NCBI GenBank assembly: GCA_977017575.1
Contig: CDRNVI010000046.1
Coordinates: 124,001-188,000, forward strand
Direction of reading: 5' to 3'
DNA from: Paramoeba atlantica
Lineage: Eukaryota; Protista; Discosea
Length of the DNA: 64,000 bases
Shown here: piece by piece, positions 4,055-59,659 of the stretch
Numbering within the stretch: position 1 is the first letter of the stretch
Layout: every line of letters begins with the position of its first letter
Notes under the pieces: model-generated
Database searches by the model: none
Told to the model about the DNA's origin: nothing
Seen by the model: the letters and a program-made list of their open reading frames with translations, nothing else
Translations under genes and position numbers: made by a program

Positions 4055-4930
4055 CTATTGTGTGCGTCTTACGCCCGTCTGGGCGCCGCTCGCCACCCCC
4101 CCACGAAAAACCGGTTGTGGTGCCCCGCTTTGCAAACGAGGACATTGAGCGCGAACGTGACCAGTTTGGCGACAATTGTAGCATACACGCGCTCCTTTCA
4201 CAACCCGTGGTAGGCGATTCACACGCAGCTGTTCCTCTGTCATGATTTGTCCGTAACGATCCTGAGGATCATCATCCTTGTGAAGGCGCTGCTGAACACG
4301 TTCTACAGGAGCTCCCGCTGCTGCCCAATAATGATTTCTAAGCTCTTCGATGAGCATTTCCGCGATACAAATGAATTGCTCATCTTTCCATCCTTCCATC
4401 ACTCTAGCTGCACAAATCCACTTTACCAATATGGCAAACAAGCGCTCACGATGTGCCGGAGGATTGAAGCGAACTCCCAGCTCCGGAGTTTCACGCAGCT
4501 CACGAACAAGCTCTCGCGGCTTAAATTCATCCAGAGAGTCGATCCAAGCCGCCCACGTCAAAGGAACAAATGAAGAAAACTTAGATGGGTCACGAACTTG
4601 CATTCCTTCCAGCGCAGCTAGCTGCTCATCACGCGGCTGTCCACCTGGCATCGCCTTGTAAACTTTAACGATAGAAAGTGCGAAATAGTCAATCAGCGGA
4701 TGGGGGAACTCATACTCATTGTCAGGATCATCCTCCCACAGGGCCCAAATATCAAACTCATCACTGTTTTTCGCCTTCTTACGGTATACTTTACCCACAA
4801 CAGTTTGATTCACATCTTCACCGCGCTCGGCCCATGTTGCCTGTATTTGCACCTTAAATCCCTTCTCCAGCAAAGTCCTAACAAAAACTAGTGGTAACGT
4901 TCGGATGAAAATAGTCTCTAAAATAGTCAA
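4055..4930 (-). CDS. gag: Gag-like protein of Y5 with CCHC zinc knuckle
   Basis: CYNCRQTGHVRAQC; RELVRELRETPELG and EELRNHYW are shared with the other Gags. Confidence 0.85.
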   Translation of the reverse strand: MTILETIFIRTLPLVFVRTLLEKGFKVQIQATWAERGEDVNQTVVGKVYRKKAKNSDEFDIWALWEDDPDNEYEFPHPLIDYFALSIVKVYKAMPGGQPRDEQLAALEGMQVRDPSKFSSFVPLTWAAWIDSLDEFKPRELVRELRETPELGVRFNPPAHRERLFAILVKWICAARVMEGWKDEQFICIAEMLIEELRNHYWAAAGAPVERVQQRLHKDDDPQDRYGQIMTEEQLRVNRLPRVVKGARVCYNCRQTGHVRAQCPRLQSGAPQPVFRGGVASGAQTGVRRTQ

Positions 4931-5640: not shown

Positions 5641-6670
5641 CTATTGGCTCCGCTTTGCACCGGTGCCGCCCGTCACCCCACCGCGAAAACCCGCGCGAGA
5701 ATTCACTTGCTGATTGAGCGGACAGTTAGTGCGAAAGTGGCCGGGCTTGTGACAACGATAGCATAGTAAAGCGGGGCGGGCCACACCAGGCTTCGTGACA
5801 CTCATCTGACGTAACTTTTCCTCGGCAACCGCCGTAGAGTAGGCATCCTTCGTGTCGTCTTCCTTGTGGATCTTCAGCTGCACCCGCTCCACTTGAATTC
5901 CGGCCGCACTCCAGTAGTGATTTCGGAGCTCCTCTATAGCGGTACGAACGATTTCGATGAAGTGCTCTTCGCGCCACATTGGAAAAACCCGTGCTGCCTG
6001 CACCCATTCCTGAACAATCTTGAACAATCGTTCGCGGATAGGTGGGGGAGTAAGAAGAAGTCCGAATTCTGGGGAGGCTCGCAAATCGCGAATTAAATCC
6101 CGGACGCGCAACTCATCGGACTCCAGCCATGGGCCCCAAGTCAGCGGATCATTTGGAGTAAAGTGCGCAGGATCCGTAATCGGGGCATTCGGGGTCTTGG
6201 GTTCCTCGTCGGCCTTTCGTCCGCCGGGCATTTTCGCTCGGACTCGGATGATCTCCAAGGAGGAATTCGATATCAGGGAAGGGAAAGTCGTAGGCTATAC
6301 CTGGATCATCGGTCCACACTGCTTCCAAAGTACCCGCATCCTCATTCTTCAAACGTACAGTCCCAATAACCGTCTCTCGAACCGCATCACCTTGGTGTCC
6401 CCAAACCGCCTCCACAGAAACCTCGTAGCCTTTAGGAATTAAGGTCCGAACATTTTCCGCGAATTCCGCTTTAGCTTCATGAGACATGGCCGCTGAACCT
6501 GTACCTCCCCGGAGCAAGTCCGCCACCTGCTCGGGGTTTAACGTCGCACGTTCCTGTGCTGTCTGCAAGCTTGGATCAATCGGGTTGGGAGAAGCTGGAT
6601 CATCTCTCACAGGGCTCTGTTGCCTCCCTAAGGACAAAGTGCGGCGCACAGTATTCAATAGGCTAGACAT
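5641..6670 (-). pseudogene. gag: Gag of family Y8, one frameshift near 6260
   Basis: ORFs 6149-6670 and 5641-6258 together align with the other Gags; CYRCHKPGHFRTNC knuckle. Confidence 0.85.
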
Positions 6671-9386: not shown

Positions 9387-12200
9387 ATGGGCATGCTGAC
9401 GCGTGCCAAGGCGAAGGATACGGGGGTAGCCCCTGTTATCCAGACGCTTCCCCCCACACGCCGGAAGAAGAAACCCCCACAGGAGCCACCACCTCCGCGG
9501 ACCCCGGCGCAACCTGCTGCACCGCCATCCGCCGCGCCGTCTGCTGCACCATCTTCCGCTGTGCCATCTGTTGCTCAGAATCCTTCCCCTCCCGGTACTG
9601 CTCCACCTATTGCGTCGCCTCCTTCCCCTCCCGGTACTGCGCCATCTACGGCATTTTCTCCTCCCGCTGCCCTTACACCTGCGCAACCACAATCTACACC
9701 GCAGACTCCTCCACAGCAGTCTCCGGGGCGATCTTACGTCCACCTCCAAAACATCTCGTCTCCGCCGACTTCCCCGCCAGCCTCAAGACCCAGCATGCAC
9801 ACCTTCTCCCGAAAAGCGCGAGCACGAGCCCTCAGAATGACAGCCGAGCCGTCATCCCCCTACGCTCTTCGATTTCCCCCATTAGCGACATCACTCCCAC
9901 CATCACACTTTTCGCCAATGAGATCGCATCCGTCGCCATCACCACTGCCACTGCCCCCCCCTCTCCGCTGCCAATCCGAAACACCAGAGTACAATCGCCC
10001 GATCACAGATGAAGAAATATTGCGTCCTCTTAACCCCTCCGCTGTCATCGTGGATGAAACTAACGGGCAACGACGCAGAAGACTGAAGGCAGAAGAAACG
10101 GCTCGCCGAAAGGCAGAAGAAACGAAGAAGGCAGAGGACTGCGCTACTAGACCGCACGAGCAATTACACCACACCGTTTGCACCACACAAATCAATGCAC
10201 CAACGCCACTAGACGCACCCGAAGAATTTCTGAACGATGAACCTACTGCCCCAACGCCAGTGGACGTACCTCCTTCGGGAGCGCTTCTGTCACACGTTCC
10301 AGAATCCAGCCTCATCCGGATCAAAAAGAAGTGGAGCGACCTTATGAACATATGCAGCAAACGAATTCCATTGCAATCTGCAAGAAATGAGTCTGAGGAG
10401 TCAGCGATTCAAGTGTTTCAAGAATGCGAAACACCGCCACCATGCGATCGGAACGGACACCACCACGAACACTCCACAGGTACGGGTGCTAAGGTCGACT
10501 ACATGTTGCGTACTATCGATCCCAAAACGCAATTTCCAATCTCGTCGAAGGAATTACAAAAGATGGCACGTACGGCACGAGTTGGGGATGAATGCTTAGT
10601 GGCCTGGAACTTCGATTGTTCGTCGTCAGTAAACATATCCCGCGGAACCGTCAAAGAACGTCGCAAGCAGAAAAATACATGCAAGTTAACCATGGAGTAC
10701 CGCGGAATACACGGCTATAAGCCAGGTGAAAAGTTCGAAGGACACATTCCGCCGCACTCGAGCGTACGCGTATACAAGGTACACTGGGACAAAGAACCCG
10801 TGATTCCGAAGGATGCGACTACGGAATCTGCTCAAGAAAACTGTCGCCCGACTTTCCAACACACTGAGGATGACCTAGATCTGGAACCTATGCCCACACT
10901 CCGAACGGTATCACCTGAATTCATACCGAGTGTGATTGCCATCTATCGTGATATTGTACGTGACTACGCGGAATGTCAATACCCCCAGCGCAATCGCATA
11001 TGGCACCGGACCTTGTCTGCAATGAAATACTCGTTAGCGACTATTCGGAAAGCAAACGGAAGACGCCGCCGTCGTCGGCCGCTGGACATCTCGCAAACGG
11101 ACCGACACGCAATCAGAACACTCGGATTCATCACAGTCACGGAACCTCGTATACAACGGCCCAGATACTGTCTCGGATAAACGCGCCATCAAGAAAGCAA
11201 CAAGCCCAGTGATCGACGGCTGCGTCTCAAAAGCAACTCGCCTTCTTGATCAAGAAGTCACACCCAGAACCCTAAACGACACCCAAACGATTGAGAAGCT
11301 GCGTGCACTTCACCCGGATTTACCTACCATGTTTCAGATGCCATACGACGCCCCAACTACTGCATGCGTCACGCCCAATGAGATACGTGAGGCAGGACGT
11401 CGCTTAGCGAAAGGAGCAGCCCCCGGACCCACAGGTACGACAGACTCGATTTTACGAATCCTATTGGACGACGAGGTATGTTGCCTAAGTTTGTGCCACA
11501 TGATAACGGACTTAATCAACGGGGAGCTCGCCGAAGAAGGCATGAAACGCATCAAAAGGGCGAGGCTCGTAGCAGTTCCAAAACCACAGCAGGGAGTGCG
11601 CCCCATTGCGGTGGGCGAGGTTTGGTTAAAGCTAGCAGAAATTGTTCTACTTCAGCGACACGAAAAAAAACTCGTACCCCTCTTTGCACCTTATCAATTC
11701 GGTGTCATGGTGAAATCGGGATGCGAACACATCATACATAAGCTGAATAAGCGTCACGAGAATTGTTGCGCCATACTTACAATAGATTTGAAAAACGCAT
11801 TCAATTCTCCGTCGCGGGATGAAATCGCTAAGGCTGTTTTTGCTTTCCACGGCCTCCGAGGGTTTTATCGTCTTTTTAATGCGGAATACAGGAATCCGTC
11901 AGAGCTCCTCTATTATGGCAGTGAGGGTCGGTTGAACAGCATTATAAAAAGTGCGGCGGGAGTACGCCAAGGATCTCCTTTGTCCACAATTTTCTTCTGC
12001 GCTTTCCTCCAACCCATTCTTGAAACCCTCGCCTCTGAATTCCCGACTCTACGGATCTATGCCTACATTGACGATATCAGCATTGCGTCAACCGAGCCGG
12101 AACTTATCGCAAAAGCTTACTTCCGCCTAAGGGAACTGCTGCTCGAGAAACGAGTAGGGGGATATGGCCCCTCAAAAGTGTGTCTGGTTCGAAGGAACTA
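9387..12200 (+). pseudogene. CRE-A non-LTR element, frameshift near 11100, 3' truncated after the RT catalytic motif
   Basis: MGMLTRAKAK N-terminus, Pro-rich region, GAAPGPTG, RPIAVGE, DLKNAFNS, GVRQGSPLS, YAYIDD. Confidence 0.9.
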
Positions 12201-12790: not shown

Positions 12791-14785
12791 TGATGTGATG
12801 ATGATGATGATTTTTAGGCAATATATCTCCGAGGAGATGTTACCTCCCTAGGACAAGCCCCCCCTTATCGCTTGCTAGGAGCCGTGCCACGCAGCACGCA
12901 AGTCAAATCCGAAGATTTGACCAGATCGAGCGCGAGCAGCCAGCTTATCTTTTTTAACCCCTTTTATATCCCTCCCCCCCTTTTTATATGCTACAAGAAA
13001 ATATTCTTTATGAAAAAAACACTTCTTTTGAAGTGAAAAAACACAACACATTCCAAAGATTATGCTGAATGACACCCACCCTAGTTCCTTAGTACCTTGT
13101 TATATCCGGTACCGGGCGGTGTCATTCTCACGCTGCAATGTCTGGGTGACCGTTACCCTAGTTATTTTGTGCCTTGTTTTGCTGGCACCGGGTAGTGTCA
13201 CCCGCGGGGCCCTGATCGTACCCACCCTAGGTATGTAGCGTCTTGTTATGCGACGATGTTACCTTGTTGCTTGTTGAATTTTTACTACTTTGCTTTTCTT
13301 TCTTTTATGTCAGAACCTCCCCCGAGGGCGGCGCAAGGCACGCCGTCGCATCAGCAGCAGAACACTGCAGCAGTGAGGTCCACTGGCGTAAAGGAGCACA
13401 ACTTGAACTTTACGGAACAAGCGAATAGACACGAGATTGGATCATGAGACCAGTTTGAGGCAAACAAGAAACTCATCCAAGACGCTAGCACGTACGACGA
13501 CCTCATGTACACAACCCCCATTCCACAGCATATTCCCCTCAACTGGCAAAAGAAGATGGAACACAAAGCGCAAAGCATCGAGAAAAACCCAACGTCAGAC
13601 CACGGCCGCCACAACACGAAAGACGAGGAAACCGCTTTTGCCAGTGTTCGGAGAAATGAAATTCTACGAAGAAGTCAAACTGGAGAGTCATCCTTGAAAA
13701 TTAAGATCAGAAAAGAGACACGACTGAAGAAAACTCCGAAAAAGGTAAAAGTGATACTCCGTAGCTCTGATCTAACGAAGGCGAACCTCGGACAAGCGGA
13801 CATGTCACATGACGAAGGATCGGAGAGCTCATCTGCATCAGGATCAGACATCCCGGAGGACGATCGGGTGGCCGAGGTCGCCGAAGAAACAATGAAAGCT
13901 CCGGACCAAATACTAAAGATAATCAACGACTGGGGAAAAGGAACTACTTGCGAGCTACATTGGAAATTCCGCCACAGCAGTGAGATTTATCAGTCGATTG
14001 GAGAAGTTGTTACGCGACATTCTAGAAAAGGTGCAATCAGGGTAAAGATTTCCTACACACCGCAGCATCAGCCAGGTCCATCAGGATTTCTATATCTACC
14101 TGCATCTCACAAGATTAACATCTTCCGATTACGGGTGGTAAAGCTCAACCGTATTGTGACACAAACGCCATTTTTGGATATCGAAGAAACACAAGATTGT
14201 GACACGGGATGCGACTTGGAGCCTCTTCCCCCACTCGCCCACATCGACCCCACGTTTGCCGCTCACGTCATAGCAATCTTTAGATCAATCCTGCGAGGAT
14301 ATCCCACGCTCAAGCTTATAACAGAGAAAACATCCGTCTGGCACAAGTTTCTAAACGCACCCCGCGACTCACTCACCACTGTGCGACAAGCGATCCAGCG
14401 GAAGTATCATGTGCCAAACAAATTGCGCAACGAGGAGCCGGCGTTCTCCTCACCTGACGAGAAACTTGAACGTGAAGTCGACCGCCGATCAATCCGCAGT
14501 GCGCTTCGAACGGCTAGGGCTGGTAACCTAAGCAAAGCTACGCGTATCCTCGACAACGTATATTTTGACTCGAACCTTAGCGTTGAGGAGAAAGTAGCGG
14601 AGCTCAAGAGTCTACATCCCGATGGAGAGCGCCCACAAGCTCAGACGGACGCAGACCCCCGAACAGGAATCATCGAAAAACACGAACTTCGGGCCGCGAT
14701 AGAGAAACTGGCTCCGGGAGCTTCCCCGGGCCCTACGGGATTGAGTGAAGCCATGTTGCGCCTACTTGCGGATGACGAGGAATCC

Positions 14786-18306: not shown

Positions 18307-21275
18307 TCAGAGGCCCAGTTCCTGAGATGTCTCCTGCGTTAGATAATTTTTCAGCTGGGAAAATACCACTGATCCGTTCAACTCTTGAAGGTGCAACGAA
18401 AATTCGTTCAAAGTTTTCCCTCTTTCAAGCCCACAGCAGTCCGCTAGCGTATGCAGAAGGGTCTTGAGCCCTTGATGCATGGCGCCGCCGGAGAGGACTG
18501 GGATGCATTTAAAACGTTCCTGCGGAATCATCCCCGATGCGACGTACGTATTATGTTTCCGTGCGATCGCATCCCTCTTTAGGGCCCCACTCCCTCGCCG
18601 CAAGTTCGACGGCGCCAATTCATGGATTACAGTGAGGTCGTAGAAGACTTCACCGGACGCCCAATATATGACTATATCAGGTCCGGACCGGTGAAGACTA
18701 GCATTTCGGCAGATCTGTTGGTGCTCACGTTTGCGCCAATGCGGGAACGACTCCCCGCAAGTGGAGCATTTGTAGGTCGTAAATTGTCGTGGCTCCCGCT
18801 CGCATGGTACCCCAGCCTTCATGCACAGATCGTAAATTCTACGCACCAGCGCATCATGTTTCGTCGTGGCATTGTTTCCAGAGCACTGAACACATCCCGC
18901 TATGTGCGAGAGGGCTGACGAAGACTCAAGAATGACTCGACACCCCGGGCATTGTAAGTTTCCTGGAAGCCGCGGGTGACTGAGACCAAGACGAGGTATA
19001 AGTGCCAAGGTGTAAAATTTGGAAGATACTAGTTTTGCGTTCGACTGTATCCACGATGAATTCCCTTTCTCGCTTGCGGCGCGCAGTAACGACGCGACAT
19101 TCGGGTCTTTCGACAGCGATTCCTTAATTGATTTGTTAAGCTGTGCTTCGGTGACGAATTCGTCGTTAGGGGGGCGGATTGAATCTTCATTTCCTACCGG
19201 CGATGGGGATGTAAGGCCTGTCGCTCGAACTGAAAGTGAATTTAGTCGTTCAAAAGCGTTGTGCCTCGACGCCTCATACGCCGATTTTCGTAGAAGATCC
19301 GTGGGCGTCAGCCCTAAACCTCCACTCTTTACCGGAAGTCGTGCCCACGCGATCTGTTTCGGATTCATTTCTCCGAACCAGGTGGTCAGAACTTCTTGCA
19401 CCTCTTTGTCGAAGGATTTCGCCATCTCAAAGGTTTCCTCTGGCCGATGGACTCGTATGTGGTACCTGTGTCTCACATTAACGCATCGCGACAAGAGGAG
19501 CATCGAAATGTTATTCGCACCCATGGTTTTCAGCCGCCGGAAAATTGCCCGGTGTTTTTCAAGCTTGTTGAGAAGTAATTCGCTGACTCTGGTTGATCCC
19601 CCTACATAGGCTCCTAGAACTTTGACGGCTTTTTCGGCTATCTGAACACCTTCGTTGACTAGTTTCTCGGGGAGTTTGACGTTGTTTAATCCATCAAACC
19701 AAACACATTTTTGCGGCGCAAGTCGGATCGATTTACTTTCCAGGAGCTCCTTGAGACGGACGTATGCAGAGGCGATGAGATCCACATCGTGTGAGGAGAT
19801 GTTGATGTCATCGACATAAGCGTATATGTTAAGCGATGGGAATTCCTGCGCGATCGTCTCAAGAATCGGTTGAAGAAATGTACAGAAATACAACGTTGAT
19901 AACGGCGACCCCTGACGCACTCCAGCCGAACTCTCGACTTTGGAGAATAATTCCCCGTTTTTGCCATAGAAGAGGAGCTCTGATGGTTCCCCATATTCAG
20001 CAACAAAAAGTCGCTGAAAGGGTCGAAGTGCGCTAAACGCGAAAATCGCTTTCGCAATGTCATCGCGTGAAGGGCTGTTAAAGGCGTTTTTCATGTCCAG
20101 AGAGAGAATGGCGTGTCCTTCCATGTACCGACGATTGAGCTCGTGCACGATAGTTTCACATCCCGCTTGGCTCATAACCCCGTGTTGCATCGGAAGAAAC
20201 AGCTTCGCGAATTTGTGTTCATGTCGAAGTATTAGGACCAGCCCCGCCAACTTCAACAGAACCTCCCCCATCGCCACAGGCCTAACGGATTTTGATGTCT
20301 TGGGAAGTGCCACGAGACGCGCTCTCCTCAATCTACGCATGACTTCTTTGGACAGCATCCCGTTGACAAGATCACAGATCATATGACACAGACTGGAACA
20401 ACAGATCTCATCATCCAATAACAACCGAACAATGGCTTCCGTTGTACCCGAAGGTCCGGGAGCCGATCCCTTTGCTAGTCTTTTCCCTGCATCACGTAGC
20501 TCTTGCGGTGGGAGGCACGCAATCTTCGGGGCGTCTGTCGGAAGCGCGAATGAAATAGGCAACGAGGGATGCAATTTTCGCAATTGGTCCAATTTTCCTT
20601 CATCCGTCATCGTTGTAGTTGCAGTTTCCTGATCTAATACTCGCGTTCCCTTCTTCGTTGCTCCTTCCAAGAGCAGTCTCGTTGCTTTCTTTATAGCCCG
20701 CAAATCACTCGCCTTTTGCTCCGCTTCACTGTTCAGAGTTGTCGTCTCCTGAATTTCAACTGGACGGCGACGACGCTTCTTTCCAATGATGTGGCGCACT
20801 GTGGCTAAAGAGTGTTTCATTGCCGACAGAGTTCTGTTCCAAATTTGATTCCGTTGCTCGTACGAGGAACTCGCGTAGTCCCTCATGATATCCCGATAGA
20901 TCGCGACAACACAAGGTACAAACTCGGAACTAACGGACCGTAAGGTGGGCATTGGGTCGAGGTCCAAATCAGCTTCGGTGTGATCAAGATCATGTCTGTC
21001 TTTGTCTTCTGTGGAATTCGTTTCCCCCGCGTTTCTCCTTGGCTCATCAAGCCAGCGTATCGAATGAATTCGCACGTTGGGATTCGGCGGAATAAACCCC
21101 TCAAATTTGGTTCCAGATTTGTGCCCTTCCACGCCTTCATATGATATGGCTATTCTACCGGCTCCCGCCCGTTTCTTGACTGATTTCACCACACCCCTCG
21201 ATATATTTAATTGTGTGGAATCGCTAAAACACCACGCCACCAGGCAACCATCACCGCGCTTCGACATTTTTGATT
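18307..21275 (-). CDS. CRE-A ORF, C-terminal part: RT, zinc motif, RLE endonuclease
   Basis: GSAPGPSG, RPVAMGE, DMKNAFNS, GVRQGSPLS, YAYVDD, CPGC...HIAGC, KHD, EPR, GPDIVIYW...FYDLTV. Confidence 0.95.
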
Positions 21276-22055
21276 GAAATCCACACCGAGGGGCCGCACA
21301 GGACATAAAAGAAAATAACTATAAAGATGAAATAATAATTTATTTTCACATGAGTTCACCTATTCATATCATATACATGAAAAGCAAATTGAAACGTATG
21401 TAGCTTCTACATCATCTTGACAAAATAGGCCTTTCAAAACAAACAATATAAATTTATAATATATCACTATGTTAGCGGGTTGCACCCGCCAAACCCGGCG
21501 GCTACCTGCCCACAAAAAACGCGTAAAGGAAAAGGATTCTACAAGTAAGTAATCAGTAAATATGTAAATTTTCAGAATACATATTGTAGCTTTTATACAT
21601 GATTCAATTACAACCCCCTTTCGGGGAAAAGAACAATGAAAATTATAACCCCCTTCCGGGGCATTTGACCCGATATTAGCCCCTCGGTTAAATTTCCATG
21701 CGTAGACTTCTAGAAATCCACACCGAGGGGCCGCACAGGACATAAAAGAAAATAACTATAAAGATGAAATAATAATTTATTTTCACATGAGTTCACCTAT
21801 TCATATCATATACATGAAAAGCAAATTGAAACGTATGTAGCTTCTACATCATCTTGACAAAATAGGCCTTTCAAAACAAACAATATAAATTTATAATATA
21901 TCACTATGTTAGCGGGTTGCACCCGCCAAACCCGGCGGCTACCTGCCCACACACACGTCACAATATTTTCCCAAACACACAGTAATTTTTTTTTTTTCGA
22001 AAATAACTAGGGAAGGATAACACAATAATAGATGACCGGTCTATTATCGTGCCCT

Positions 22056-28837: not shown

Positions 28838-31800
28838 TTACATATAGCGGCTTTTCTTCACAAAAATGGGGGCATTCGTCAGTCTACCCCGTGATGTCTT
28901 GTACTGAGAAAACGTTACTGGATCCCCGGTATTAGCTTCTGGGTTGAGTGAACGAGCAATCCTGACTGTGCTGCCTTCTTCTGTATTTTTCAGTTTCCCT
29001 TTTTTCATATTCACTTTGTGTGGAGATTTTTCTTGGAGATCATGCTCCCTTTTTTGACCGTGATTAGATTTGTTTCCCTCCCTTTGCGTGTGAATGACGC
29101 ATGAAAAACGACGTGCAGCTGTTCTCTGTGCTTTGCGTGCTATTTCATCAGCTTTTTCATTGAAGGAATTCCCGCAGTGTGCCCGCACTTTAATAACGTA
29201 GAGACTACTATCTGTACAACGCTCTTTAATTGCTCCTTGTATCTGCGTGAGTAGGTCAGCATTTGGCATGCCACCGTATCCAATGATTGAAAAACGAACC
29301 CTAACATTATGATACCAGTCCCATACATAATGAGAATCAGTATGTATAACTGTGTTCCTCGTAGAAGACGAAGCTGCCTGAATGCCTAAAAGAAAGGAGC
29401 GAAGTTCAGCCCGATCCGGTGAAGTGCATTCCGGTGGTAAAACGTGTTGTCTGGTTCTTACACCATTTGAATTAACAATAACTATCCCCGAACCCGCGGC
29501 TGGTTTTCCTGCTTCTGAACTGACAGCCCCATCTACGTATATGTGTTCGGAATCAGCTGAGAGAGGAGAATGGTCCGTGCCTTCTTCAATTCCTTCGAGT
29601 ACTTTGTAGGTGGTAGTATCTAAGTCCTGGCATACCTTCTTCCAGGATCTAGAGCCGAAAACCATGTAGGATTTGTGAGATTCAAGATATTCACGCAAAA
29701 ATTTAACTCTCGACGCCCACCAATCCCGATCTCCCGCTAGGACATTGAGATCTTCGACATCTAGTTCCATGTCTTCAGCACATGCCTCTGATAGAGTGGG
29801 ACGATATTTCTTTCCTGTTGCTTTGCGCCATAGCATTACCGATTTGAAGGGATTATTGCCGCGGATCAGGTGTCCTAGCATTTGAACTCGGAGGACTCGA
29901 CATGCGTTAGAAAGTCGCATTCTGTTCCCATATAGTGCATCACATGGTGTACCTCTTGTACCATCCCAAGTACGAACCCCGAGCGCTAGTCTTCTCATTC
30001 GGTTCACTTCACAGTCAATTAAATCAGCGTCTTTTTTTATTAGGGAAAAGTTTCCACAGCCATACAGCAATAAAGGTGAAACCAGAGATTCGAATAAGTG
30101 AAATTTTGTGACAAGCGTGAGGCCTGATTTCCATAATGACTGTAGGCGATGTGTTGCAGCCCACGCTAAGTTAATTCGGTCTTCAAAGTTTACAATGACA
30201 CCCTTATTAGTAATTTTCAACCCCAAGTATCGATATTCGGTGATTCGAGGCACCAACCCCCCATTCGTTAGAATCAAGTCTCCTTGTGCGTCATTCACTT
30301 GACCTACTGTCATCCACGCAGTTTTATTTACACCAATGTTGAGACGTAAGTTGACTTTCGCAGCTGTTTGTTCCAGTCTTTCCATAACGCGATTCAAATT
30401 AGTAAGAGAGGGACATATGAGCACTAAATCATCCGCGTATGCTAAATAATTTAGACATTGCGCAGGCTTTCCTTGTCTTTTTGTGCCCGCCCTTCGCAAG
30501 ATAAGTCCGAACTCATTTTCCTTATACACTTCAGCCATGACTCGATCCAGAACCATGAGGAATAGGACAGGGGCCAAAACATCACCTTGAAGTGTGCCAC
30601 ACTGGATCGGAAACGTATCAGTAACTCCGCTTTTGCATCGTACAACTGCTTCTGTTTTTTCATACATAGACATTATCATGCTGCTGAGATGCTGCGGGAT
30701 GTGAAAGGCTTCCAGTGCAGCACGAATGGAGAAAAAGCTGACTGAAGGAAATGCCTGACGGAAATCCACGAAGCCTAGCGCAACACCAGGATTCTCACGA
30801 GACGCTTTCTGGCACAACTCAATGAGGGTTGCTTGTGCTCCCGTTGTTGCTCTATTGGGTCGGAATCCGTATTGACAATCACTTAATTGAGCATCCACTG
30901 TAGGAAGAATTCGATTTAGTATCATACGGTTCATGAGTTTTGCAGCGTGCACTATTAGACATATTGGTCTCCAATTGTTCATGTTGCCTAAGTCGCCTTT
31001 TTTCGGAACTGGGACTTGGATAACTCGTTTCCATGTCTGTGGCGCTCTTCCGCTCTCACGAACCATATTAATTAAATGTAGAAGAATAGATTGTATGAAC
31101 GGATCGCTGTTCAGTACTCGTAAGGCTTCAATTGGAATCGAGTCAATGCCTGGTGCTTTACCAGTTGCCATATCTTTAAGAGCAGTCGTCAATTCATTGA
31201 GATCAAACGGTCCATCAGATATAGGGATAAACGACTTTGGCGCTTCCGCAAATTTGATCTTGTTGTCTACCTCCTTTAGTTGCACAGTATTCTGAAAGTG
31301 TAATCGCACATTACATAATTGTTCGCTTTTTGTTTTTCCTGGCGGTCTGAGGCGTGATGAAGTGTGCCCAGTCATCATTTTAACATGTCTCCAAGAAGAA
31401 CGTTTGTATCTTTGAAAGTTTTGTTGTAGAGACAGGCATTCTTGAGTGATATTTTCATTCACGGTGATGCTATGTTCTTTTACTAGAGAATCGAACCTCT
31501 GCGGACTTTGAGACGTACGGAAAATGTCACGGATTCGCAACTGTGTAGTAGTTTCATCGTTTGAAGCAAACATGTTTATGTTTTTCTCCTTCGTTGGTAT
31601 AGATTCAGCAGCCATGATAATTGCTTTTTCCAATTTATCCCACAAAATATCACTTGGAAATATCACAGGCATTTCGGTTGACATTTTCTGGTTTGGCTCA
31701 TTTCGTCTTCTTTTCATCCCAACTATCTCCGCATGTTCGGTGTAGTTCTCTTTCACACGGCGTATGAAGTCCATACATATTTGTGGATCCTTTAACTGAT

Positions 31801-33043
31801 ACCACGGTAATCGCAAGCTACCGTCATTTACTGAAGCTTTCCAACGAAACTTAGTTTTTACTGTTACTATTTGATGTCGAGTCGGCACCGGGGGTTGGAG
31901 AACTCTGTGGCCATGTAAGGTAGTGACGAAACGTTTGTTGACAAGAATATGGTCTAGTTGTTTTACAGTTCCATTTTGAAAAGTATAAGTCCACTTCTTT
32001 CTGCTTGGGCAGGATGTATGTGCCGCGCGAGCCCCAAGCTCAGACAGTAAATTGGTAAGCCGATGTTGTGCCTTATTTTTACGCATTATTCGCTGACACT
32101 TATCTGTCAGTGGCGCATTAAGATCCCCCAGAACAAGTTTTATTTTCGCATTACTAAGATTCCATGCATCACGTAGATCATTGCAAAATTTCTCCTTTAC
32201 GTCATCTTTTGCCACCGCCGTGGGGGCATAAACATTGAATAGCACACCGTGGAATTTTGGTAAGTCTAGAGTAACCTGTTGGATCCGATCACTGATTCGC
32301 GACACAAGAGCAGGCTCAAATAGGCTTAGAATCATGAGTCCACCGTAACCTTTGATAGCGCCTTGAATATAAACATGAAATACGAACTTTCCATGACGAA
32401 TTGTCTGATGTGCAATGTTTTGAATGATATCGGTTTGTACACGAGTTTCCTGAAGGCAACAGAGGGCAAGGCCTCGCTCGACCATGTACGACATAATTTC
32501 CCGTAGTCGTGTCGATTTGCGAAGGGAGAAATAATCAGTTCCCTTTAGTTTCAGGGTAGTGACGTTTAGAGTTGCAAGATGTAGCGTCTTGTTCGTGGCA
32601 ATGGGGTTAGATTCCTCGACCGCCGGGGAGCCATTCCGACGGGGAAGTCGGGCAGAACGGTGCTTCCTACATTTCTTCTTACGGGGGGGTGCCACGCGGC
32701 CCGCACAGATCGCTACTCGTGGGTCTATAGGGGGAAAAGGAAACGATACTCCAGGACAACAGTCATAGCGAATACGCCATAGACCATTTTTGGCCCGAAA
32801 TTTCGCAGTCCCTTGCCACATCTTTAGCCTTTGAGCAAACGACCAGCGCCAGACCACAGCGACACGAGACCCCGCACGAATCGTGTTGGACATACTGGTT
32901 ACCGCACGATCACGGAGTTTTGCTACGCCAACCTTTGACTTTGATGGCCAAAAATTGACGCCCCGACCTAACCTGGACCGACCAATAAGAGCAACCGGGT
33001 CAGAACACCGCTTTCTCTCATTGACCGTGCCGGAGGTATCCAT
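28838..33043 (-). CDS. Intact 1401-aa APE endonuclease - RT - RNase H polyprotein (ingi/L1Tc-like domain order)
   Basis: APE: TLNV, LQETR, NVYAPT, GDLNA, LDHI. RT: APGIDS, WRPICL, QYGFRP, DFRQAF, QGD, YADD, YLG. RNase H: YVDG, RAEL, HTDS, KVRAH, NEKAD. Confidence 0.95.
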   Translation of the reverse strand: MDTSGTVNERKRCSDPVALIGRSRLGRGVNFWPSKSKVGVAKLRDRAVTSMSNTIRAGSRVAVVWRWSFAQRLKMWQGTAKFRAKNGLWRIRYDCCPGVSFPFPPIDPRVAICAGRVAPPRKKKCRKHRSARLPRRNGSPAVEESNPIATNKTLHLATLNVTTLKLKGTDYFSLRKSTRLREIMSYMVERGLALCCLQETRVQTDIIQNIAHQTIRHGKFVFHVYIQGAIKGYGGLMILSLFEPALVSRISDRIQQVTLDLPKFHGVLFNVYAPTAVAKDDVKEKFCNDLRDAWNLSNAKIKLVLGDLNAPLTDKCQRIMRKNKAQHRLTNLLSELGARAAHTSCPSRKKWTYTFQNGTVKQLDHILVNKRFVTTLHGHRVLQPPVPTRHQIVTVKTKFRWKASVNDGSLRLPWYQLKDPQICMDFIRRVKENYTEHAEIVGMKRRRNEPNQKMSTEMPVIFPSDILWDKLEKAIIMAAESIPTKEKNINMFASNDETTTQLRIRDIFRTSQSPQRFDSLVKEHSITVNENITQECLSLQQNFQRYKRSSWRHVKMMTGHTSSRLRPPGKTKSEQLCNVRLHFQNTVQLKEVDNKIKFAEAPKSFIPISDGPFDLNELTTALKDMATGKAPGIDSIPIEALRVLNSDPFIQSILLHLINMVRESGRAPQTWKRVIQVPVPKKGDLGNMNNWRPICLIVHAAKLMNRMILNRILPTVDAQLSDCQYGFRPNRATTGAQATLIELCQKASRENPGVALGFVDFRQAFPSVSFFSIRAALEAFHIPQHLSSMIMSMYEKTEAVVRCKSGVTDTFPIQCGTLQGDVLAPVLFLMVLDRVMAEVYKENEFGLILRRAGTKRQGKPAQCLNYLAYADDLVLICPSLTNLNRVMERLEQTAAKVNLRLNIGVNKTAWMTVGQVNDAQGDLILTNGGLVPRITEYRYLGLKITNKGVIVNFEDRINLAWAATHRLQSLWKSGLTLVTKFHLFESLVSPLLLYGCGNFSLIKKDADLIDCEVNRMRRLALGVRTWDGTRGTPCDALYGNRMRLSNACRVLRVQMLGHLIRGNNPFKSVMLWRKATGKKYRPTLSEACAEDMELDVEDLNVLAGDRDWWASRVKFLREYLESHKSYMVFGSRSWKKVCQDLDTTTYKVLEGIEEGTDHSPLSADSEHIYVDGAVSSEAGKPAAGSGIVIVNSNGVRTRQHVLPPECTSPDRAELRSFLLGIQAASSSTRNTVIHTDSHYVWDWYHNVRVRFSIIGYGGMPNADLLTQIQGAIKERCTDSSLYVIKVRAHCGNSFNEKADEIARKAQRTAARRFSCVIHTQREGNKSNHGQKREHDLQEKSPHKVNMKKGKLKNTEEGSTVRIARSLNPEANTGDPVTFSQYKTSRGRLTNAPIFVKKSRYM

Positions 33044-36000: not shown

Positions 36001-37368
36001 AAGGAAAGGTCTTACAATAAGGAAAGGTCTTACAATAAGGAAAGGTCTTACAATAAGGAAAGGTCTTACAATAAGGAAAGGTCTTACAATAAGGAAAGGT
36101 CTTACAATAAGGAAAGGTCTTACAATAAGGAAAGGTCTTACAATAAGGAAAGGTCTTACAATAAGGAAAGGTCTTACAATAAGGAAAGGTCTTACAATAA
36201 GGAAAGGTCTTACAATAAGGAAAGGTCTTACAATAAGGAAAGGTCTTACAATAAGGAAAGGTCTTACAATAAGGAAAGGTCTTACAATAAGGAAAGGTCT
36301 TACAATAAGGAAAGGTCTTACAATAAGGAAAGGTCTTACAATAAGGAAAGGTCTTACAATAAGGAAAGGTCTTACAATAAGGAAAGGTCTTACAATAAGG
36401 AAAGGTCTTACAATAAGGAAAGGTCTTACAATAAGGAAAGGTCTTACAATAAGGAAAGGTCTTACAATAAGGAAAGGTCTTACAATAAGGAAAGGTCTTA
36501 CAATAAGGAAAGGTCTTACAATAAGGAAAGGTCTTACAATAAGGAAAGGTCTTACAATAAGGAAAGGTCTTACAATAAGGAAAGGTCTTACAATAAGGAA
36601 AGGTCTTACAATAAGGAAAGGTCTTACAATAAGGAAAGGTCTTACAATAAGGAAAGGTCTTACAATAAGGAAAGGTCTTACAATAAGGAAAGGTCTTACA
36701 ATAAGGAAAGGTCTTACAATAAGGAAAGGTCTTACAATAAGGAAAGGTCTTACAATAAGGAAAGGTCTTACAATAAGGAAAGGTCTTACAATAAGGAAAG
36801 GTCTTACAATAAGGAAAGGTCTTACAATAAGGAAAGGTCTTACAATAAGGAAAGGTCTTACAATAAGGAAAGGTCTTACAATAAGGAAAGGTCTTACAAT
36901 AAGGAAAGGTCTTACAATAAGGAAAGGTCTTACAATAAGGAAAGGTCTTACAATAAGGAAAGGTCTTACAATAAGGAAAGGTCTTACAATAAGGAAAGGT
37001 CTTACAATAAGGAAAGGTCTTACAATAAGGAAAGGTCTTACAATAAGGAAAGGTCTTACAATAAGGAAAGGTCTTACAATAAGGAAAGGTCTTACAATAA
37101 GGAAAGGTCTTACAATAAGGAAAGGTCTTTACAATAAGGAAAGGTCTTACAATAAGGAAAGGTCTTACAATAAGGAAAGGTCTTACAATAAGGAAAGGTC
37201 TTACAATAAGGAAAGGTCTTACAATAAGGAAAGGTCTTACAATAAGGAAAGGTCTTACAATAAGGAAAGGTCTTACAATAAGGAAAGGTCTTACAATAAG
37301 GAAAGGTCTTACAATAAGGAAAGGTCTTACAATAAGGAAAGGTCTTACAATAAGGAAAGGTCTTACAA
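33060..37368. repeat. 18-bp tandem array (TTACAATAAGGAAAGGTC)n, about 239 copies
   Basis: Near-perfect; one extra T at about 37130. Confidence 0.98.
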
Positions 37369-41046: not shown

Positions 41047-42137
41047 AGCATTCCCGGTCTTCGGTATGGCGCAGGCGCGCGAGCTGGTGTGACGTGCGGA
41101 GTAAAATAACGCTGCGATCCTTGAGGTACATACGTGGCGTATGCTCGAGATAAACGTTTTTCTCTTTCGGCCAGCTGATCACTCACGTGGTGGTAAAATT
41201 TATCGTTGGGACGCACGTCTTTTTGCATTTTCTCATGTACTAGCTCCACGTCCACGCGACGCGCACGCCAGTACGCGTCACGTAGCGATTGGATAATTGC
41301 TCGGCCCATCTCAAGAAAAGTACTCTGGTTCCACCCGGGCGTTTGTCGAGCCAGAATAATCCACTTGCAGAAAATTCCATTAAAATTACGCTCTTGCTGT
41401 TTTACGAAAGTACGATCTTGGAAGTACTGGTTAACTCGTAATCCAAACTCAGGTGCATCACGCAGTTCACGTATTAAATCCCTCGTTCGAAACCCACCCT
41501 CATCGAGAGACATAATCCACGGCTCAAATGTAATGGGCTCATAGGGATCCAGGGCGTTCGGGTCGAGAACCAACGGGGATGCATCTGTCGAAAATATCAC
41601 TTCCGCAGGTTCCTCATTAACACGAGTTTCATCGAGCGCGTTCATTTGCCGTACAGGTCGGCGCCCTTGTGTCGGTAACATCGCAGAGGGTACAGTTGGT
41701 TGAGTTCCTGGCGTGGTCGAAGGTTGTGTCGGATCTCCTGCTGTCTGTGGCCCCCCCTGGGCTGTCCCTCCCCTCGTCTCGGTCTGTGGAACCTCCCCTG
41801 GAAAATGGTGGATTTTTACCTGATAATAATTCAGTTCCGCATGAGGAAAAGGATACTCTTTCGTGGGTTCATCTTCCCACACGGCCCATAACTCCAAACC
41901 TTCCTGACGAACTTTTCCGTACACTGCTTTTATTGATTCATTGGGCTCGTCCTTGCGGCGAAAAAAAGCTTGCACTGACACCGCCGGCTTGTCGGCCGGT
42001 GCCAAAAGAAGTCTCTCCCGGATCACTGCACATACATTGGTCAGATCGTGCGTCGTAAGCGGCTCGGTAGGCGCGAGCGGCTCCGTCACAGGAGAGGAAC
42101 GTCGGGAGCTCCGTAAGCTCCGCGTCGAAGGATTCAT
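40944..42137 (-). CDS. gag: Gag-like protein of Y3
   Basis: First ATG at 42137 just inside A1; CFGCRSPDHVWKNC knuckle. Confidence 0.88.
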   Translation of the reverse strand: MNPSTRSLRSSRRSSPVTEPLAPTEPLTTHDLTNVCAVIRERLLLAPADKPAVSVQAFFRRKDEPNESIKAVYGKVRQEGLELWAVWEDEPTKEYPFPHAELNYYQVKIHHFPGEVPQTETRGGTAQGGPQTAGDPTQPSTTPGTQPTVPSAMLPTQGRRPVRQMNALDETRVNEEPAEVIFSTDASPLVLDPNALDPYEPITFEPWIMSLDEGGFRTRDLIRELRDAPEFGLRVNQYFQDRTFVKQQERNFNGIFCKWIILARQTPGWNQSTFLEMGRAIIQSLRDAYWRARRVDVELVHEKMQKDVRPNDKFYHHVSDQLAEREKRLSRAYATYVPQGSQRYFTPHVTPARAPAPYRRPGMLCFGCRSPDHVWKNCPKRDFRSRVAGPAGSSKSL

Positions 42138-46598: not shown

Positions 46599-46608
46599 GT
46601 TGAGTTCA

Positions 46609-49357: not shown

Positions 49358-51400
49358 TGGTTGTGCTAACGCGCTCCAAGAGATTATGGACAAAAGCAGC
49401 GACATTCACGACAACTCCACAAATTCAGACGAAATGAACATCGAACCGCGAGAATGCATCACACGACAAGAATCACGACAAAGCAAACCACGGAAAATCA
49501 AAGTTATCATCGGAGACTCACGACCTTCGGATCAAACAAGCTCAGATATGCCATCGAAGTCTCCCCAAATAACCGAAAATGCGCCGCAAAATGAAGACGA
49601 CATGTCAGCGGACACCGATGGCCTAAGTACCTCATCTGAAACAATGTCATCCGACGATCTGTGTATGAGTGAGCTGGCACGCACACGAAGTTTGAAAGCG
49701 CCAGACCAAGTTCAAGACATTGTATCAGAATGGGGCCGCGGTAATCAATGCGAGATCCTTTGGAACTTCCGCTACGGAGAAGAAATTTTTTATTCTGTCG
49801 GCGAAGTAGTGTCCCGCGTCTCAAGGAAAGGTCAGGTTCGTATAAAGATTGCGTACTCCCCTGCTGAAGGACAAACCGGACCCCAAGGAAACCTCTTTCT
49901 TCCACAGTCTGACAAAGTGCGAGTCTTTCAAATCTGTGCTACGAAGATAAATCGAATACCAAGCAAAGGAGTAAACACGCTAAATTTTCCGGAGAGCATG
50001 TCAGAGACGACGAAGGAATCCGACACGCACAGAGACATGGAACCACTTCCACCGCTAGCTCAAATAGAACCGTCCTTTGCTGTACATGTGGTTTCAATTT
50101 TCAGAGAGACAATTCGCGAATATCCTCGTTTACAACTTCTGTCCGAAAAAGAAACCCTATGGCACAGGTTCCTAAATGCTCCGAGAGATGCTTTGACCAC
50201 TGTGAGGAAAATGCTAATGCGAACACGAGCCACGACTCACTAGCCGAAAAGTAAAAGTAAATATGAATACAACGTCGACAAGCTCAGCCAAGAAGAACAA
50301 GAAGAGTTAGAAACTGACCGCCGAGCGATCCGCAATGCTTTACGAACGGCAAAAGCAGGAAACCTAGGCAAAGCAACGCGTATTCTCGATAACGTCTACA
50401 AACAATCACCCCTGACTGTCGAAGAAAAAGTTTCTCTTCTAAAAAGTCTCCATCCTTCCGGGAAAACGCCTCAAATGCCGATGAGTGTTGACTTTCCGCG
50501 CATTGGAATTGTTGAACGAGACGAACTCCTCTTAGCGGCCAGCAAATTGGCAAAGGGTGCTTCCCCCGGACCTACAGGTTTCAGCGAATCGATGTTGCGA
50601 CTTCTCGCCGACGATGAAGAATGCAGCATTTGCTTATGCCACATGTTCCGCGACGTGATCAATGGCGACATTCCAAACTCAGTGCGTGATCGACTCACAA
50701 GATGCAGATTAGTAGCTTTGCCCAAACAAATAAATAAACTGCGCCCGATTGCTATAGGAGAGACCATCCTTAAAGTGTGTGGCATCATTCTTTTGCAACG
50801 ACATGAAGACGCGCTTAAAAAGCACTTTCAAACCTTCCAACGAGGCATACTACAAAAGAATGCGTGTGAGCAAATTGTGCATGAACTGATAGAAGAATAC
50901 GAGGCAGTTTAGAGTGGTTTCAGAAAGGAGCAAAAAACTGTCCATTGGCATTGCAGAAAGCTGGTCTATCGTCACCGGAGAAATCTGTCAAGATCCTAGG
51001 CGCCTACATAGGGGAGAATGAGGACGTTAGTGAAAAGCTCGTACGACAGTCAGTAAAGCATGTATGCCTTTTTCGACGTTTGCAAATCATGGGCCCAAGC
51101 AATCTTTCGTTAGCAATGTTGCAACGATGCACGATTCCACGACAGGATTACTTTTTGCGCGTCCACAAACCAGCAGCTACACTGAAAATTGCGGAATGCT
51201 TCGATGCTGAAATATCAAGAATTATCTCACACTGGTTTCTCGCCACAGGTGACTCACTCCGCCTCGCAACTCTACCGCAAAAAATGGGAGGCCTTGGTCT
51301 CACTCAGTCCACCTTAAAGCAACGGTACTTTTTTGAAGCAGCCAGACGATCTATTGATGAGCCAGACGATCTATTGATGTTTTTCATGAATGCCACTCCC
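49358..51400 (+). pseudogene. Degenerate CRE-B copy (stop at 50243, deletions)
   Basis: MVVLTRS start, WGRGNQCEILW domain, RILDNVY, GASPGPTG, RPIAIGE, MGPSNLSL. Confidence 0.85.
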
Positions 51401-51739: not shown

Positions 51740-54698
51740 GCATAATAAATAACATGTATCGAATAGTAAACAAAGAAACAACTAAAATGTATCTGATTGC
51801 TCACAAGCCCTATTTCCCAATCTCAAAACATAACATCAACATTAAACTGTAAATAATATGTTCTCACGACAATTTTAGGCCTGCAAACATATATGTCACT
51901 GTCACTCTGTTAACGGGGTTCCCCCCACCGGAACCCTCGACCAAATGGCTGGGGGCTCGGTGGGCGGGCACAAAAACTTTTGAAACGTAAGTAGAAAAAA
52001 TAGCCTACCAAGAATATAAAGAATGAATAATGAAATTACAACACTATTTGAAACAAATCATAATTTGAAGAAATTATGTGCCCCGAAGGGCCAAGCAGGC
52101 ATAAACAACTCCCTGCCCCGCGGCTAAATTTCCAAACGTGGCGGTTGCGGCGGCGGCGGTTGCGGCGGGAACGGAGATCCGGGGTAGAGGGCGAGCCGGG
52201 AGGGAGAGACTGCGACGACGGAGACGTATCGGGGAGAAACGACGCGGAGGAGGAGTATTGCCACGCATGCGTGGCCGTCTTTCTCGTCGGCGGAGGAGCG
52301 GGGAGGGAATGGGGGTAGTAAATTCCACCCGTCGTCGCCTGGGACGACGGGCACGAGCAATAATTGGGGTGGGGAGCATTTCCTAGTGGAAAGCCCGCGA
52401 TGCGCCGTAACGGTTGGCGCCGCCCACCACCCCGCCGCGAAAATCCTGTGGCGGGGCGCGTGTGGTACGGAACTGTCCCCCCTGTTGTTGAGATGTTTGC
52501 GGGCAATTCGATCGGAGGTGGCCTGGCTGATGACAGCCCAAACAAAACGGTCCCTGGCTGCGTCGTCGAGGAGCACGCTGCGCAGTCCGGCCCCTCAGTT
52601 GCTCGTCGACCACAAGCTGACCGTAGCGGTCCTGAGGGTCGTCGTCACGGTGCAACCGCTGTTGCACACGTTCGACTGCAACACCCGCCGCAGCCCAATA
52701 ATGGTTGCGAAGCTCTTCGATGATGAGAAGGGCTACGGCGAGGTTGTGCTTCTCTAGCCAACCCTCAGTGTTGCGCGCAGCGTAAACCCATTCAGTTTTT
52801 CGAGAAATGGCGTCCTTCATAAGTTGGGTTCCGGTTCGACTTTTTTTTTTTTTTTTTTTTTTTTTATAAAATTAGGAATAGTATTTCCGTACCGATGCAA
52901 TACGCATCGTTCCATTCACATGGTAAGATCAACAATTTTCAATAATCGAAAACCAAATTATTACTGATTTGTCGCAATGGCATACCTAGAAATGGCATAC
53001 CTAGTATGGTTAAATTGTGCATTCGCTTTCTTGCTTGTCTCGTCCAAGATATTTCTTTAACTGTGTGTATGCGACAGCGCCGTTAAGTTCTTGCAAGAGA
53101 AGTTGAAACTCCTCTTTTATTTGTTGTCGGGGACGTCCGCTGGCATCCGCCAGTGCCGTAAGCAGAGCTTGTGTGTCCGTGTGCATAGAGCCTCCTGATA
53201 ATATGGGAATGCATTTAAAGGATTCTTCAGCTATTTTGCCGGTTTTAACGTAGGTATCATGTTTTCGTTTACAAGCCTCTCGAAATAGATTGGCGCATTT
53301 AACTGCGAGATTGGAGGGTGCTAGTTCATGGACGATTGTCAAGTCATAGTAGATTTCTCCACTTGCCCAATGAACAACTAAGTCGGGTCCTGATCGGCGA
53401 AACGATTTGCCGCCGCATGTTTTTTCGTGTGTCCTCTTGTGACTCGGGTCGACGACCTCATCGCATTGTGTGCACCGGAGGGTAGAGAAGGTGCGCGGCT
53501 CTTTCTCTTCAGTTAACATCTTTCTCTTCAGTTAACATCTTGAACAGGCGCTCGCGCTGCGGCGGAGGGTTGAAGCGTACCCCAAGCTGCGGAGCTTCGC
53601 GCAGCTCACGGATGAGTTCACGTGGCTTGAACAAATCATCCGTGTCGATCCACGGTTGCCAAGTAACCGGATCGTAGGGGGAGAAGCTTTTCGGGTCCGT
53701 AACACGGACGCGTTCAAACGCCGGAATCAAATCTTCAACTGGTTTCCCACCCGGCATCTGCGCCCGAACATGGGCAAGGTCCAAGGAGTGGTAGTTGATC
53801 TCGGGATGGGGAAAACGGTAGGCTGTATTCACGTCCCCATCCCATTCTGTGAACAACTCAGTTGATTCAGGGTCCTTGGGATGCGTCATATGCACCCGCC
53901 CTATAGCCGTCTGCCGTAGGCCATCTCGGGGAAGAGACCATACAGCTTCGACGGTGACCTCATACCGTTTGCGCAGAAGGCCAATCACTTTCATGACAAA
54001 CTCTTCTTTGCCCTGGCTGGTCATGATTCCTCGGGCATCAAGGCGTGAACGCTGGGGCACCTCGGCGTGGTCAATGTCGAGGGCATCGTATCGACGAGGC
54101 GAGCGAGAAGCCTCAACCTGGTCAGGGTTGAGGGTCCCCTTGCGACGAATTGGGGCCTCCGGAGCGTCGAGCGGAATAGGGTAGGGACTGGTAAACGAGC
54201 TCGTGGGGAGACTCGGGAGATTACTTGGGAGCGGGCTTGGTGGTTCACGGGCCGGGCTCAAAGCTCTGCCAGATGGACGTATCTTCCGTCGCGCTGGGCC
54301 TGGGGTAGGGGGAACATGAGTGGGTTTCGCGGGTACCTGCGGAGCTGGCTGCGTCGGGAGAGAGGGAAGAGGGGGCCGTACGGGAGGACACGAGAGGGAC
54401 TGGCGCTTGGAACGCGAAAATGACGAAGTTTCGATCGGTGTCGGGGCGCGGTCTCTTTTTGGAGAGCGATCACGATCCTGGCTTGGCTCGTGTGGAGCCC
54501 GCAAACGTTGGGATCTCATCACAAAAACTTTTGAAACGTAAGTAGAAAAAATAGCCTACCAAGAATATAAAGAATGAATAATGAAATTACAACACTATTT
54601 GAAACAAATCATAATTTGAAGAAATTATGTGCCCCGAAGGGCCAAGCAGGCATAAACAACTCCCTGCCCCGCGGCTAAATTTCCAAACGTGGACTATT
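51740..54698 (-). mobile_element. Deleted YR retrotransposon (family Y7); gag split by a CRE-A insertion
   Basis: A repeats 51969-52141 and 54520-54692; G-rich linker at about 51945; gag 54519-53508 plus 52797-52383 (KMLTE|WVYAAR; CLGCHQPGHLRSNC). Left boundary approximate. Confidence 0.85.
52798..53507 (-). mobile_element. 5'-truncated CRE-A (RLE part) in the Y7 gag
   Basis: EPRTF...GPDLVVHW...YYDLTIVH; poly(A) 52841-52864; TSD ttcagtt at 52791 and 53508. Confidence 0.85.
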
Positions 54699-59650: not shown

Positions 59651-59659
59651 AGAAGAGAT

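Follow-up and report, generated by a model that had tools for sequence, protein, structure and literature searches.

The window analysed here is a stretch of 64,000 nucleotides from Paramoeba atlantica (contig CDRNVI010000046.1, positions 124,001 to 188,000), and it is occupied entirely by retroelement open reading frames (ORFs). These belong to a long interspersed nuclear element with an apurinic/apyrimidinic endonuclease (APE LINE), to CRE-like elements with a reverse transcriptase (RT) and a restriction-like endonuclease (RLE), and to tyrosine-recombinase (YR) elements represented by Gag and RT/RNase H ORFs. The initial annotation had placed at 32693-32881 an unnamed domain of about 65 residues shared by the three classes. 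These positions lie on the minus strand and correspond to residues 55-117 of the LINE ORF, N-terminal of the endonuclease. The domain was identified as a divergent Tudor domain of the Spin/Ssty type, and profile comparisons pointed to related, more derived versions in the N-terminal part of the CRE-like (RLE) LINE ORFs and in the YR Gag proteins of the same genome.

The LINE ORF begins with the Tudor-like domain, which is followed by the APE endonuclease (residues 176-377), the RT (679-944), and RNase H (1166-1305), the enzymes being assigned by Pfam. Exo_endo_phos, RVT_1, and RNase_H all fall within 28838-33043 as in the ingi clade, and the element is an ingi-like single-ORF LINE that shares the APE-RT-RNase H architecture of ingi/L1Tc. 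Its main features are as follows:

28838..33043, minus strand: APE LINE ORF, 1401 residues, intact, single ORF (ORF list and Pfam)
32684..32923, minus strand: Spin/Ssty-like Tudor domain, ORF residues 41-120, a helix and then five strands (AlphaFold2 [AF2], Foldseek, VIA-align, ESM Atlas, and profile)
32654..32683, minus strand: Arg/Lys-rich stretch, residues 121-130, abutting the barrel (alignment A1, columns 101-116)

The LINE domain and its closest known family

The genome searched comprised 45.7 Mb in 248 contigs. The LINE domain was found in at least 134 places, in several families with 30-49% identity to the window copy. All 30 copies that were fetched stood at the N-terminus of an APE LINE, and every LINE family of this genome carried one domain copy per LINE. 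A hidden Markov model (HMM) search with the own-genome LINE alignment A1 over 1.84 billion proteins retrieved 33 relatives (E ≤ 1e-3), most of them visible APE LINE N-termini and six of them short fragments without a class. The source was looked up for 20 clusters of these relatives, and all were metagenome assemblies. Widening the LINE alignment with the metagenomic relatives gave alignment A4 (39 sequences). Word-based protein searches left the LINE and CRE regions without a match and, for YR, returned only a protein of the same genome; a metagenome scan with the YR alignment retrieved no relative.

An AF2 model of the LINE domain built with A4 showed one helix and a five-stranded barrel, with a mean predicted local distance difference test score (pLDDT) of 96 and a predicted template modelling score of 0.82; a first model built from 9 sequences was poor (pLDDT 56) and was not used. 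The 43 top Foldseek matches of the A4 model in the PDB were all Spindlins. In VIA-align, repeat 1 of Spindlin1 was superposed with a Z of 7.5 and a root mean square deviation of 2.5 Å over 67 residues (27% identity). A fold search independent of Foldseek ranked Spindlin-4 first (Z 6.4), tied with bL19 and WYL barrels, and the nearest ESM Atlas cluster was the Spin/Ssty family (TM 0.62). The A4 profile matched 17 distinct Spindlin sequences of the PDB with E-values of 1.6e-5 to 4.8e-4, the next match being at 0.21. Spin-Ssty (PF02513) was also the Pfam family with the largest number of matching A4 members (4 of 39 at E < 10, best 7.9e-4). The LINE domain is thus a Spin/Ssty-type Tudor domain missed by Pfam, and its fold is not novel. 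The beta-rich Tudor/SH3-like module proposed earlier was borne out by the model and by its Foldseek comparison; the epithet "unnamed" holds as far as no Pfam match exceeds the threshold, but Spin/Ssty is the closest known family.

The LINE domain resembles Spindlin (PDB 5y5w, 4mzf, 4uy4) in its superposable five-stranded barrel, in the W/W/Y aligned with the cage residues, in an aromatic residue on strand 4, and in the tandem copies of some external LINEs. It differs from Spindlin, which has three interlocked repeats, in having one copy in the LINE families of this genome and two in some metagenomic LINEs. It also differs in its fusion to a retrotransposon polyprotein, in a loop between strands 1 and 2 that is one residue longer, in an FPFPP motif of its own, and in its protist origin, named Spin/Ssty proteins being mostly chordate. 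A search with PF02513 over the whole genome retrieved no host Spin/Ssty gene, and the control genomes were silent too, so this result is uninformative.

The cage of Spindlin Tudor 2 consists of F141, W151, Y170, and Y177 (bioRxiv 10.1101/2021.03.07.432812). HMMER aligned the W, W, and Y conserved in the LINE profile with cage residues one to three of Spindlin repeats 1 and 2. As the fourth Spindlin cage residue lies beyond this alignment, its counterpart was proposed by position only. The corresponding codons in the window are as follows:

32849-32851, minus strand: W65, aligned with the Spindlin cage, codon read
32816-32818, minus strand: W76, aligned with the Spindlin cage, codon read
32765-32767, minus strand: Y93, aligned with the Spindlin cage, codon read
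32735-32737, minus strand: F103, candidate fourth cage residue

These columns were compared in 39 LINE, 10 CRE, and 13 YR sequences:

First cage residue: LINE W 31, F 8; CRE W 10; YR W 11, F 2
Second cage residue: LINE W 37; CRE S 9, A 1; YR V 12, A 1
Third cage residue: LINE Y 35, W 3, F 1; CRE Y 10; YR W 13
Strand-4 aromatic: LINE F 33, L 6; CRE Y 4, F 3, H 2, S 1; YR F 13

The G before strand 2 and one P were invariant in all three versions, and the near-invariant positions common to the classes were G, W/F, G, Y/W, an aromatic residue, and P. An aromatic cage at Spindlin-equivalent positions is predicted for the LINE version only, by alignment and not from model geometry. Two tandem copies ahead of the endonuclease were seen in several metagenomic LINE relatives (P0014, P0017, P0021, P0022, P0023, P0027, P0030, P0032, and P0033); in the second repeat, F usually takes the place of the first cage W, and the terminal motif is LPPP.

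We estimate a probability of about 0.6 that the LINE N-terminus carries a Spindlin-like Tudor domain that docks on methylated chromatin and that the CRE and YR elements carry related, more derived versions. The LINE protein would enter the nucleus, where its aromatic cage would dock on methyl-lysine or methyl-arginine, carried by a histone tail or by some other chromatin protein. Docking would then bias endonuclease nicking and target-primed reverse transcription to chromatin with that mark, as chromodomains do for chromoviruses. Such steering is plausible for the LINE domain, in which the residues aligned with the Spindlin aromatic cage are kept; for the CRE and YR versions the case is less clear. 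As these lack the second cage Trp, their ligand is probably different or their binding weaker.

The main competing explanation, which we consider possible at rather long odds, is that the barrel is a nucleic-acid-binding module of the SH3/KOW/bL19/WYL kind with which the single-ORF LINE, the CRE protein, and the YR Gag would hold their own RNA or the target DNA, and which would read no histone mark. Just behind Spindlin, at Z 4.4-6.5, the fold matches included bL19, WYL-domain regulators, the Spt5 KOW domain, and an ssDNA-bound PWWP domain. The Arg/Lys-rich patch directly after the LINE barrel is kept in all LINE families in alignment A1 and is likely a nuclear import or nucleic-acid contact segment. 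The LINEs have no separate ORF1 RNA-binding protein, the Gag protein that carries the YR module handles nucleic acid and has a CCHC knuckle, and the CRE and YR versions have no full aromatic cage. Against this explanation, the sole link at the sequence level is to Spindlin, all 17 top PDB matches being Spindlins, and W, W, and Y are kept at the Spindlin cage positions in 31-37 of the 39 LINEs, which is unexpected for an RNA-binding surface.

Versions in the CRE-like and YR elements

Every peptide quoted in the initial annotation was found at its coordinates. The motif lies at 32849-32872 (minus strand) in the LINE, at 10584 (plus) and 21187-21255 (minus) in CRE-A, at 13940, 49740, and 59718 (plus) in CRE-B, and at 4814 and 6386 (minus) in YR Gags, with further copies at 53761-53982 and 41793-41993 (minus). 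The spacing from W to G is 12 residues in the LINE, CRE-A, CRE-B, and three YR families and 14 in Y3, as had been reported; across the wider LINE family, it varies by a few residues. In the six-frame translation of the window, the strict pattern G..[VC].[VIL].W-x12-G.[VA] occurred six times (one LINE, two CRE-A, and three CRE-B matches) and nowhere else, compared with a mean of 0.017 matches in residue-shuffled translations. Taken alone, this count is weak evidence and serves as a sanity check, because the pattern was written from these very sequences and five of the six matches are CRE relatives. The domains in the window are as follows:

10545..10793, plus strand: CRE-A domain, preceded in ORF 9387-11180 by a Pro-rich N-terminal extension (LINE-only HMM 16.7 bits in the envelope; hhalign of the LINE profile A4 against CRE-A 95.2%)
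21043..21276, minus strand: CRE-A domain, N-terminus (residues 15-92) of the 999-residue RT-bearing ORF 18307-21306
13901..14152, plus strand: CRE-B domain, ORF 13505-14935 (jackhmmer, hhalign)
49701..49955, plus strand: CRE-B domain, ORF 49386-50243 (strict pattern, jackhmmer, LINE-only HMM)
59679..59933, plus strand: CRE-B domain, ORF 59598-61058 (strict pattern, jackhmmer, LINE-only HMM)
6230..6448, minus strand: YR Gag domain Y8, ORF 6149-6670 (hhalign, LINE-only HMM)
4664..4879, minus strand: YR Gag domain Y5, ORF 4055-4930, which ends in a CCHC zinc knuckle (jackhmmer)
53761..53982, minus strand: YR Gag domain Y7, ORF 53509-54522 (jackhmmer)
41793..41993, minus strand: YR Gag domain Y3, ORF 40944-42158, with F for the first W and a spacer two residues longer (jackhmmer)

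The CRE and YR stretches were each found in at least 150 places of the genome, and in all three classes the domain stands at the N-terminus of the first protein. The class labels of the CRE and YR elements are partly verified. The nearest solved relatives of the CRE RT were R2 proteins (E 9e-7), and the C-terminal part was judged by eye to contain a CCHC motif and a PD..D..K-like motif; such an R2-like RT followed by a putative RLE would match the arrangement of CRE/SLACS/CZAR. For the YR elements, Pfam identified zf-CCHC in Gag and the presence of RT_RNaseH, and a putative recombinase ORF (502-1191) gave weak integrase matches (E 0.29-0.69). A Gag-like ORF combined with a putative YR and with RT/RNase H would match VIPER/TATE.

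Within the fetched DNA, jackhmmer joined CRE-A to CRE-B, and neither single-sequence nor jackhmmer searches crossed a class boundary. Narrow profiles built from the own-genome sequences gave 12% for LINE-YR, 14% for LINE-CRE, and 0.1% for CRE-YR, the first two already scoring above all column shuffles. The signal emerged only once metagenomic relatives had been added to the LINE profile. In hhalign, A4 matched CRE at 95.2% (E 2.7e-8) over 71 columns, which make up the entire domain, and YR at 89.5% (E 2e-6) over 47 columns, both in the register of the initial annotation. None of the 150 column shuffles reached these scores (z 15.7 for CRE and 10.8 for YR; top shuffle probability 11%), and reversed profiles gave 0.3% and 1.1%; the aligned HMM comparison that had been proposed placed the LINE-CRE and LINE-YR scores above every shuffled control.

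Limiting the LINE profile to APE-verified LINEs gave 94.4% for CRE and 43.8% for YR, and limiting it to external LINEs, with no sequence of this genome, gave 95.7% and 68.1%. Because both subsets gave the same LINE-CRE result, it is not circular, and contamination of the LINE profile by non-LINE sequences was likewise rejected. A merged LINE and CRE profile matched YR at 85.7% over 60 columns. Over A4 and its LINE subsets, LINE-YR ranged from 44% to 90% (E 2e-6 to 2e-4), compared with 94-96% for LINE-CRE with every LINE subset.

A LINE-only HMM was further run against 2,914 ORF pieces obtained by six-frame translation of the window and of 90 loci. Directly after the LINEs, ranks 35-79 (45 pieces) were all CRE or YR domain pieces with 8.7-17.7 bits, each aligned inside its independently defined envelope, and the best reversed decoy scored 7.8 bits. 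When LINE, Gag, and CRE proteins were compared over their full length, nothing but the domain matched, with a score about twice that of the runner-up or more. In the whole 999-residue CRE-A ORF, for example, the LINE profile matched residues 14-89 only, with a score of 39.6 and a runner-up of 11.4. A chance motif was rejected on the basis of the LINE-only HMM ranking, the column shuffles, the reversed profiles, and the residue shuffles.

From these profile comparisons, homology of the LINE and CRE versions appears very probable and that of the LINE and YR versions probable, and the CRE and YR versions are joined only via the LINE version. Convergence on a small-barrel fold, above all in YR and possibly in CRE, without a common origin with the LINE domain, would account for the low narrow-profile values (12-14%), the noise-level comparison of CRE with YR, and the dependence of the LINE-YR value on the LINE sequences chosen (44% to 90%), and the domain is short and beta-rich. 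We consider it unlikely, as the LINE-CRE value stayed at 94-96% for all LINE subsets, including the one without a sequence from this genome, P-values (single comparisons) ranged from 1e-8 to 2e-4 with shuffled and reversed controls never above 11%, and the matches always fell in the same register, end to end over the domain.

The earlier claim of one domain in three classes therefore stands for the links of LINE with CRE and of LINE with YR, and not for a direct link between CRE and YR. The description of the classes as unrelated was overstated, as ingi-like and CRE-like elements are both non-LTR (long terminal repeat) retrotransposons, although their endonucleases differ. Because related versions sit in three element classes of one genome, the module probably either moved between element classes or was taken up more than once from one source.

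Proposed chromatin docking and its place among known systems

Several results weigh against docking of the LINE domain on methylated chromatin with derived versions in the other classes. The Pfam Spin-Ssty cut-off (25 bits) was reached by none of the 39 LINE members, and the window domain gave no match. For such a small barrel, structural Z values of 6-7.5 are moderate, and since bL19, WYL, and KOW-like barrels follow Spindlin closely, the modelled fold by itself does not separate histone binding from nucleic-acid binding. The CRE and YR profiles matched neither Spindlin nor any other PDB chain, and feature searches of the ESM Atlas with these two domains yielded nothing usable. A fold shared across the three classes is suggested by sequence profiles, the LINE domain being the one version with a model. 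The CRE and YR versions are without the second cage Trp, their profiles showed no direct similarity to each other (0.1%), and the LINE-YR value dropped to 44% with the strictest LINE subset. When the LINE was sought in RNA runs, none held it; DNA runs of the same organism carried it with 2-5 base differences. In addition, nesting can arise by selection against insertions elsewhere, without targeting.

The extreme nesting in the window had been tentatively attributed to a common chromatin compartment to which the module may steer all three classes. Matches of the three classes were found in the same contig stretches (C18 at 7-312 kb, C43 at 40-150 and 670-795 kb, and C63 at 370-675 kb), and this co-occurrence fits a common compartment and equally fits selection against insertions elsewhere. 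That a single Spindlin-type reader was passed among the APE LINE, the RLE LINE, and the YR element as a common address label, bringing them to the same compartment and so forming nested islands, is a tentative extension to which we give about one chance in four.

The cage might instead bind a methylated non-histone host protein, such as an Arg-methylated RGG protein of RNA silencing or processing, or the domain might self-assemble, so that the module would serve ribonucleoprotein formation or silencing evasion and not target choice; Tudor domains generally read methyl-arginine on non-histone proteins, and the YR module sits in Gag, but no particular partner is indicated and the closest relatives are histone readers, and we consider this the least probable of the alternatives. 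The Spindlin cage also takes the unmethylated Arg of SPIN-DOC peptides (bioRxiv 10.1101/2021.03.07.432812), a point in favour of a non-histone ligand.

On balance, the Spindlin-like Tudor module is real and conserved, with good support in APE and RLE LINEs and probably present in YR Gags, and chromatin reading can reasonably be inferred. Of the known ways in which mobile DNA selects "safe" chromatin, reader domains carried by retroelements are the clearest. Their standard example is the chromodomain of chromoviruses at the C-terminus of the Ty3/gypsy integrase, which reads a methyl mark and is thought to tether integration to marked chromatin. It is the best functional analogy for the LINE domain, as both are small "royal family" readers on a retroelement protein. 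Unlike the LINE domain, the chromodomain is another fold variant and is located on the DDE integrase of LTR elements, whereas the Tudor module precedes the APE endonuclease of the LINE and also occurs in RLE LINE ORFs and YR Gags; no chromodomain was found among the fold matches of the LINE model. PHD fingers and other add-on domains occur in LINE ORF1 proteins. They are likewise accessory reader-type domains on non-LTR retrotransposon proteins but have another fold and another position, and we know of no description of one PHD-type module shared over three element classes.

Surveys of kinetoplastid INGI, CRE, VIPER, and TATE elements describe no Tudor-like module, and no clear domain is reported for the Gag-like ORF (PMC6681497, PMC12278014). 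The literature found to join Spindlin or Tudor domains with retrotransposons was only on host defence. This would be the first Spindlin-like Tudor domain on retrotransposons, and its carriers would be non-LTR and tyrosine-recombinase elements, not LTR elements. If the profile links hold, the same module in three classes with different integration chemistry would be direct evidence that mobile elements of one genome exchange modules, and part of the Gag-like ORF of VIPER/TATE-type elements, so far described as "domain-less", would gain a fold. The module would also offer a handle on the formation of transposon islands in kinetoplastid-like genomes, in which chromatin marks are little understood, and W65, W76, and Y93 are ready loss-of-function controls.

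Repeats and other features of the elements

An 18-bp tandem array at 33060-37368 directly precedes the LINE ORF start, and a second array region of the same unit lies at 42377-46599. The upstream sequence was read for three other families (L008/L009, L017, and L029), each of which has its own short tandem repeat immediately upstream of the ORF start, open in frame; the repeat unit differs by family. A 153-bp tandem repeat is located at 25824-28037 (14.5 copies) and 46609-47150 (3.5 copies), with 98% matches, and the two arrays flank a block comprising the LINE, the 18-bp arrays, and an inserted YR element. A 727-residue ORF spans the longer array.

The LINE ORFs of several families share a conserved start peptide, M-[AT]-[DE]-A-S-G (window 32924-33043, minus strand, and L012, L016, L019, and L022). 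Between this start and the barrel lies an ARLGRG.LFLPP motif, in a region that was modelled poorly (pLDDT < 60). The wide LINE profile further detected a group of ORFs of about 1535 residues (G000 C12:178357, C6:21365, C50:81649, and C18:289580-289882), in which each match covers only half of the domain, either positions 1-48 or positions 41-77; they may form a more divergent LINE family whose barrel is interrupted by an insertion.

The first 30 or so residues of the CRE-A ORF (9387-9480, plus strand) and of a Pro-rich ORF located just upstream of a YR-type RT/RNase H ORF (25172-25261, minus strand) are alike, with the pattern MG..TR.KAK.TGVAPVI...RR.KK (BLASTP E 3e-9, 50% identity). This would be a second N-terminal piece common to different element classes.

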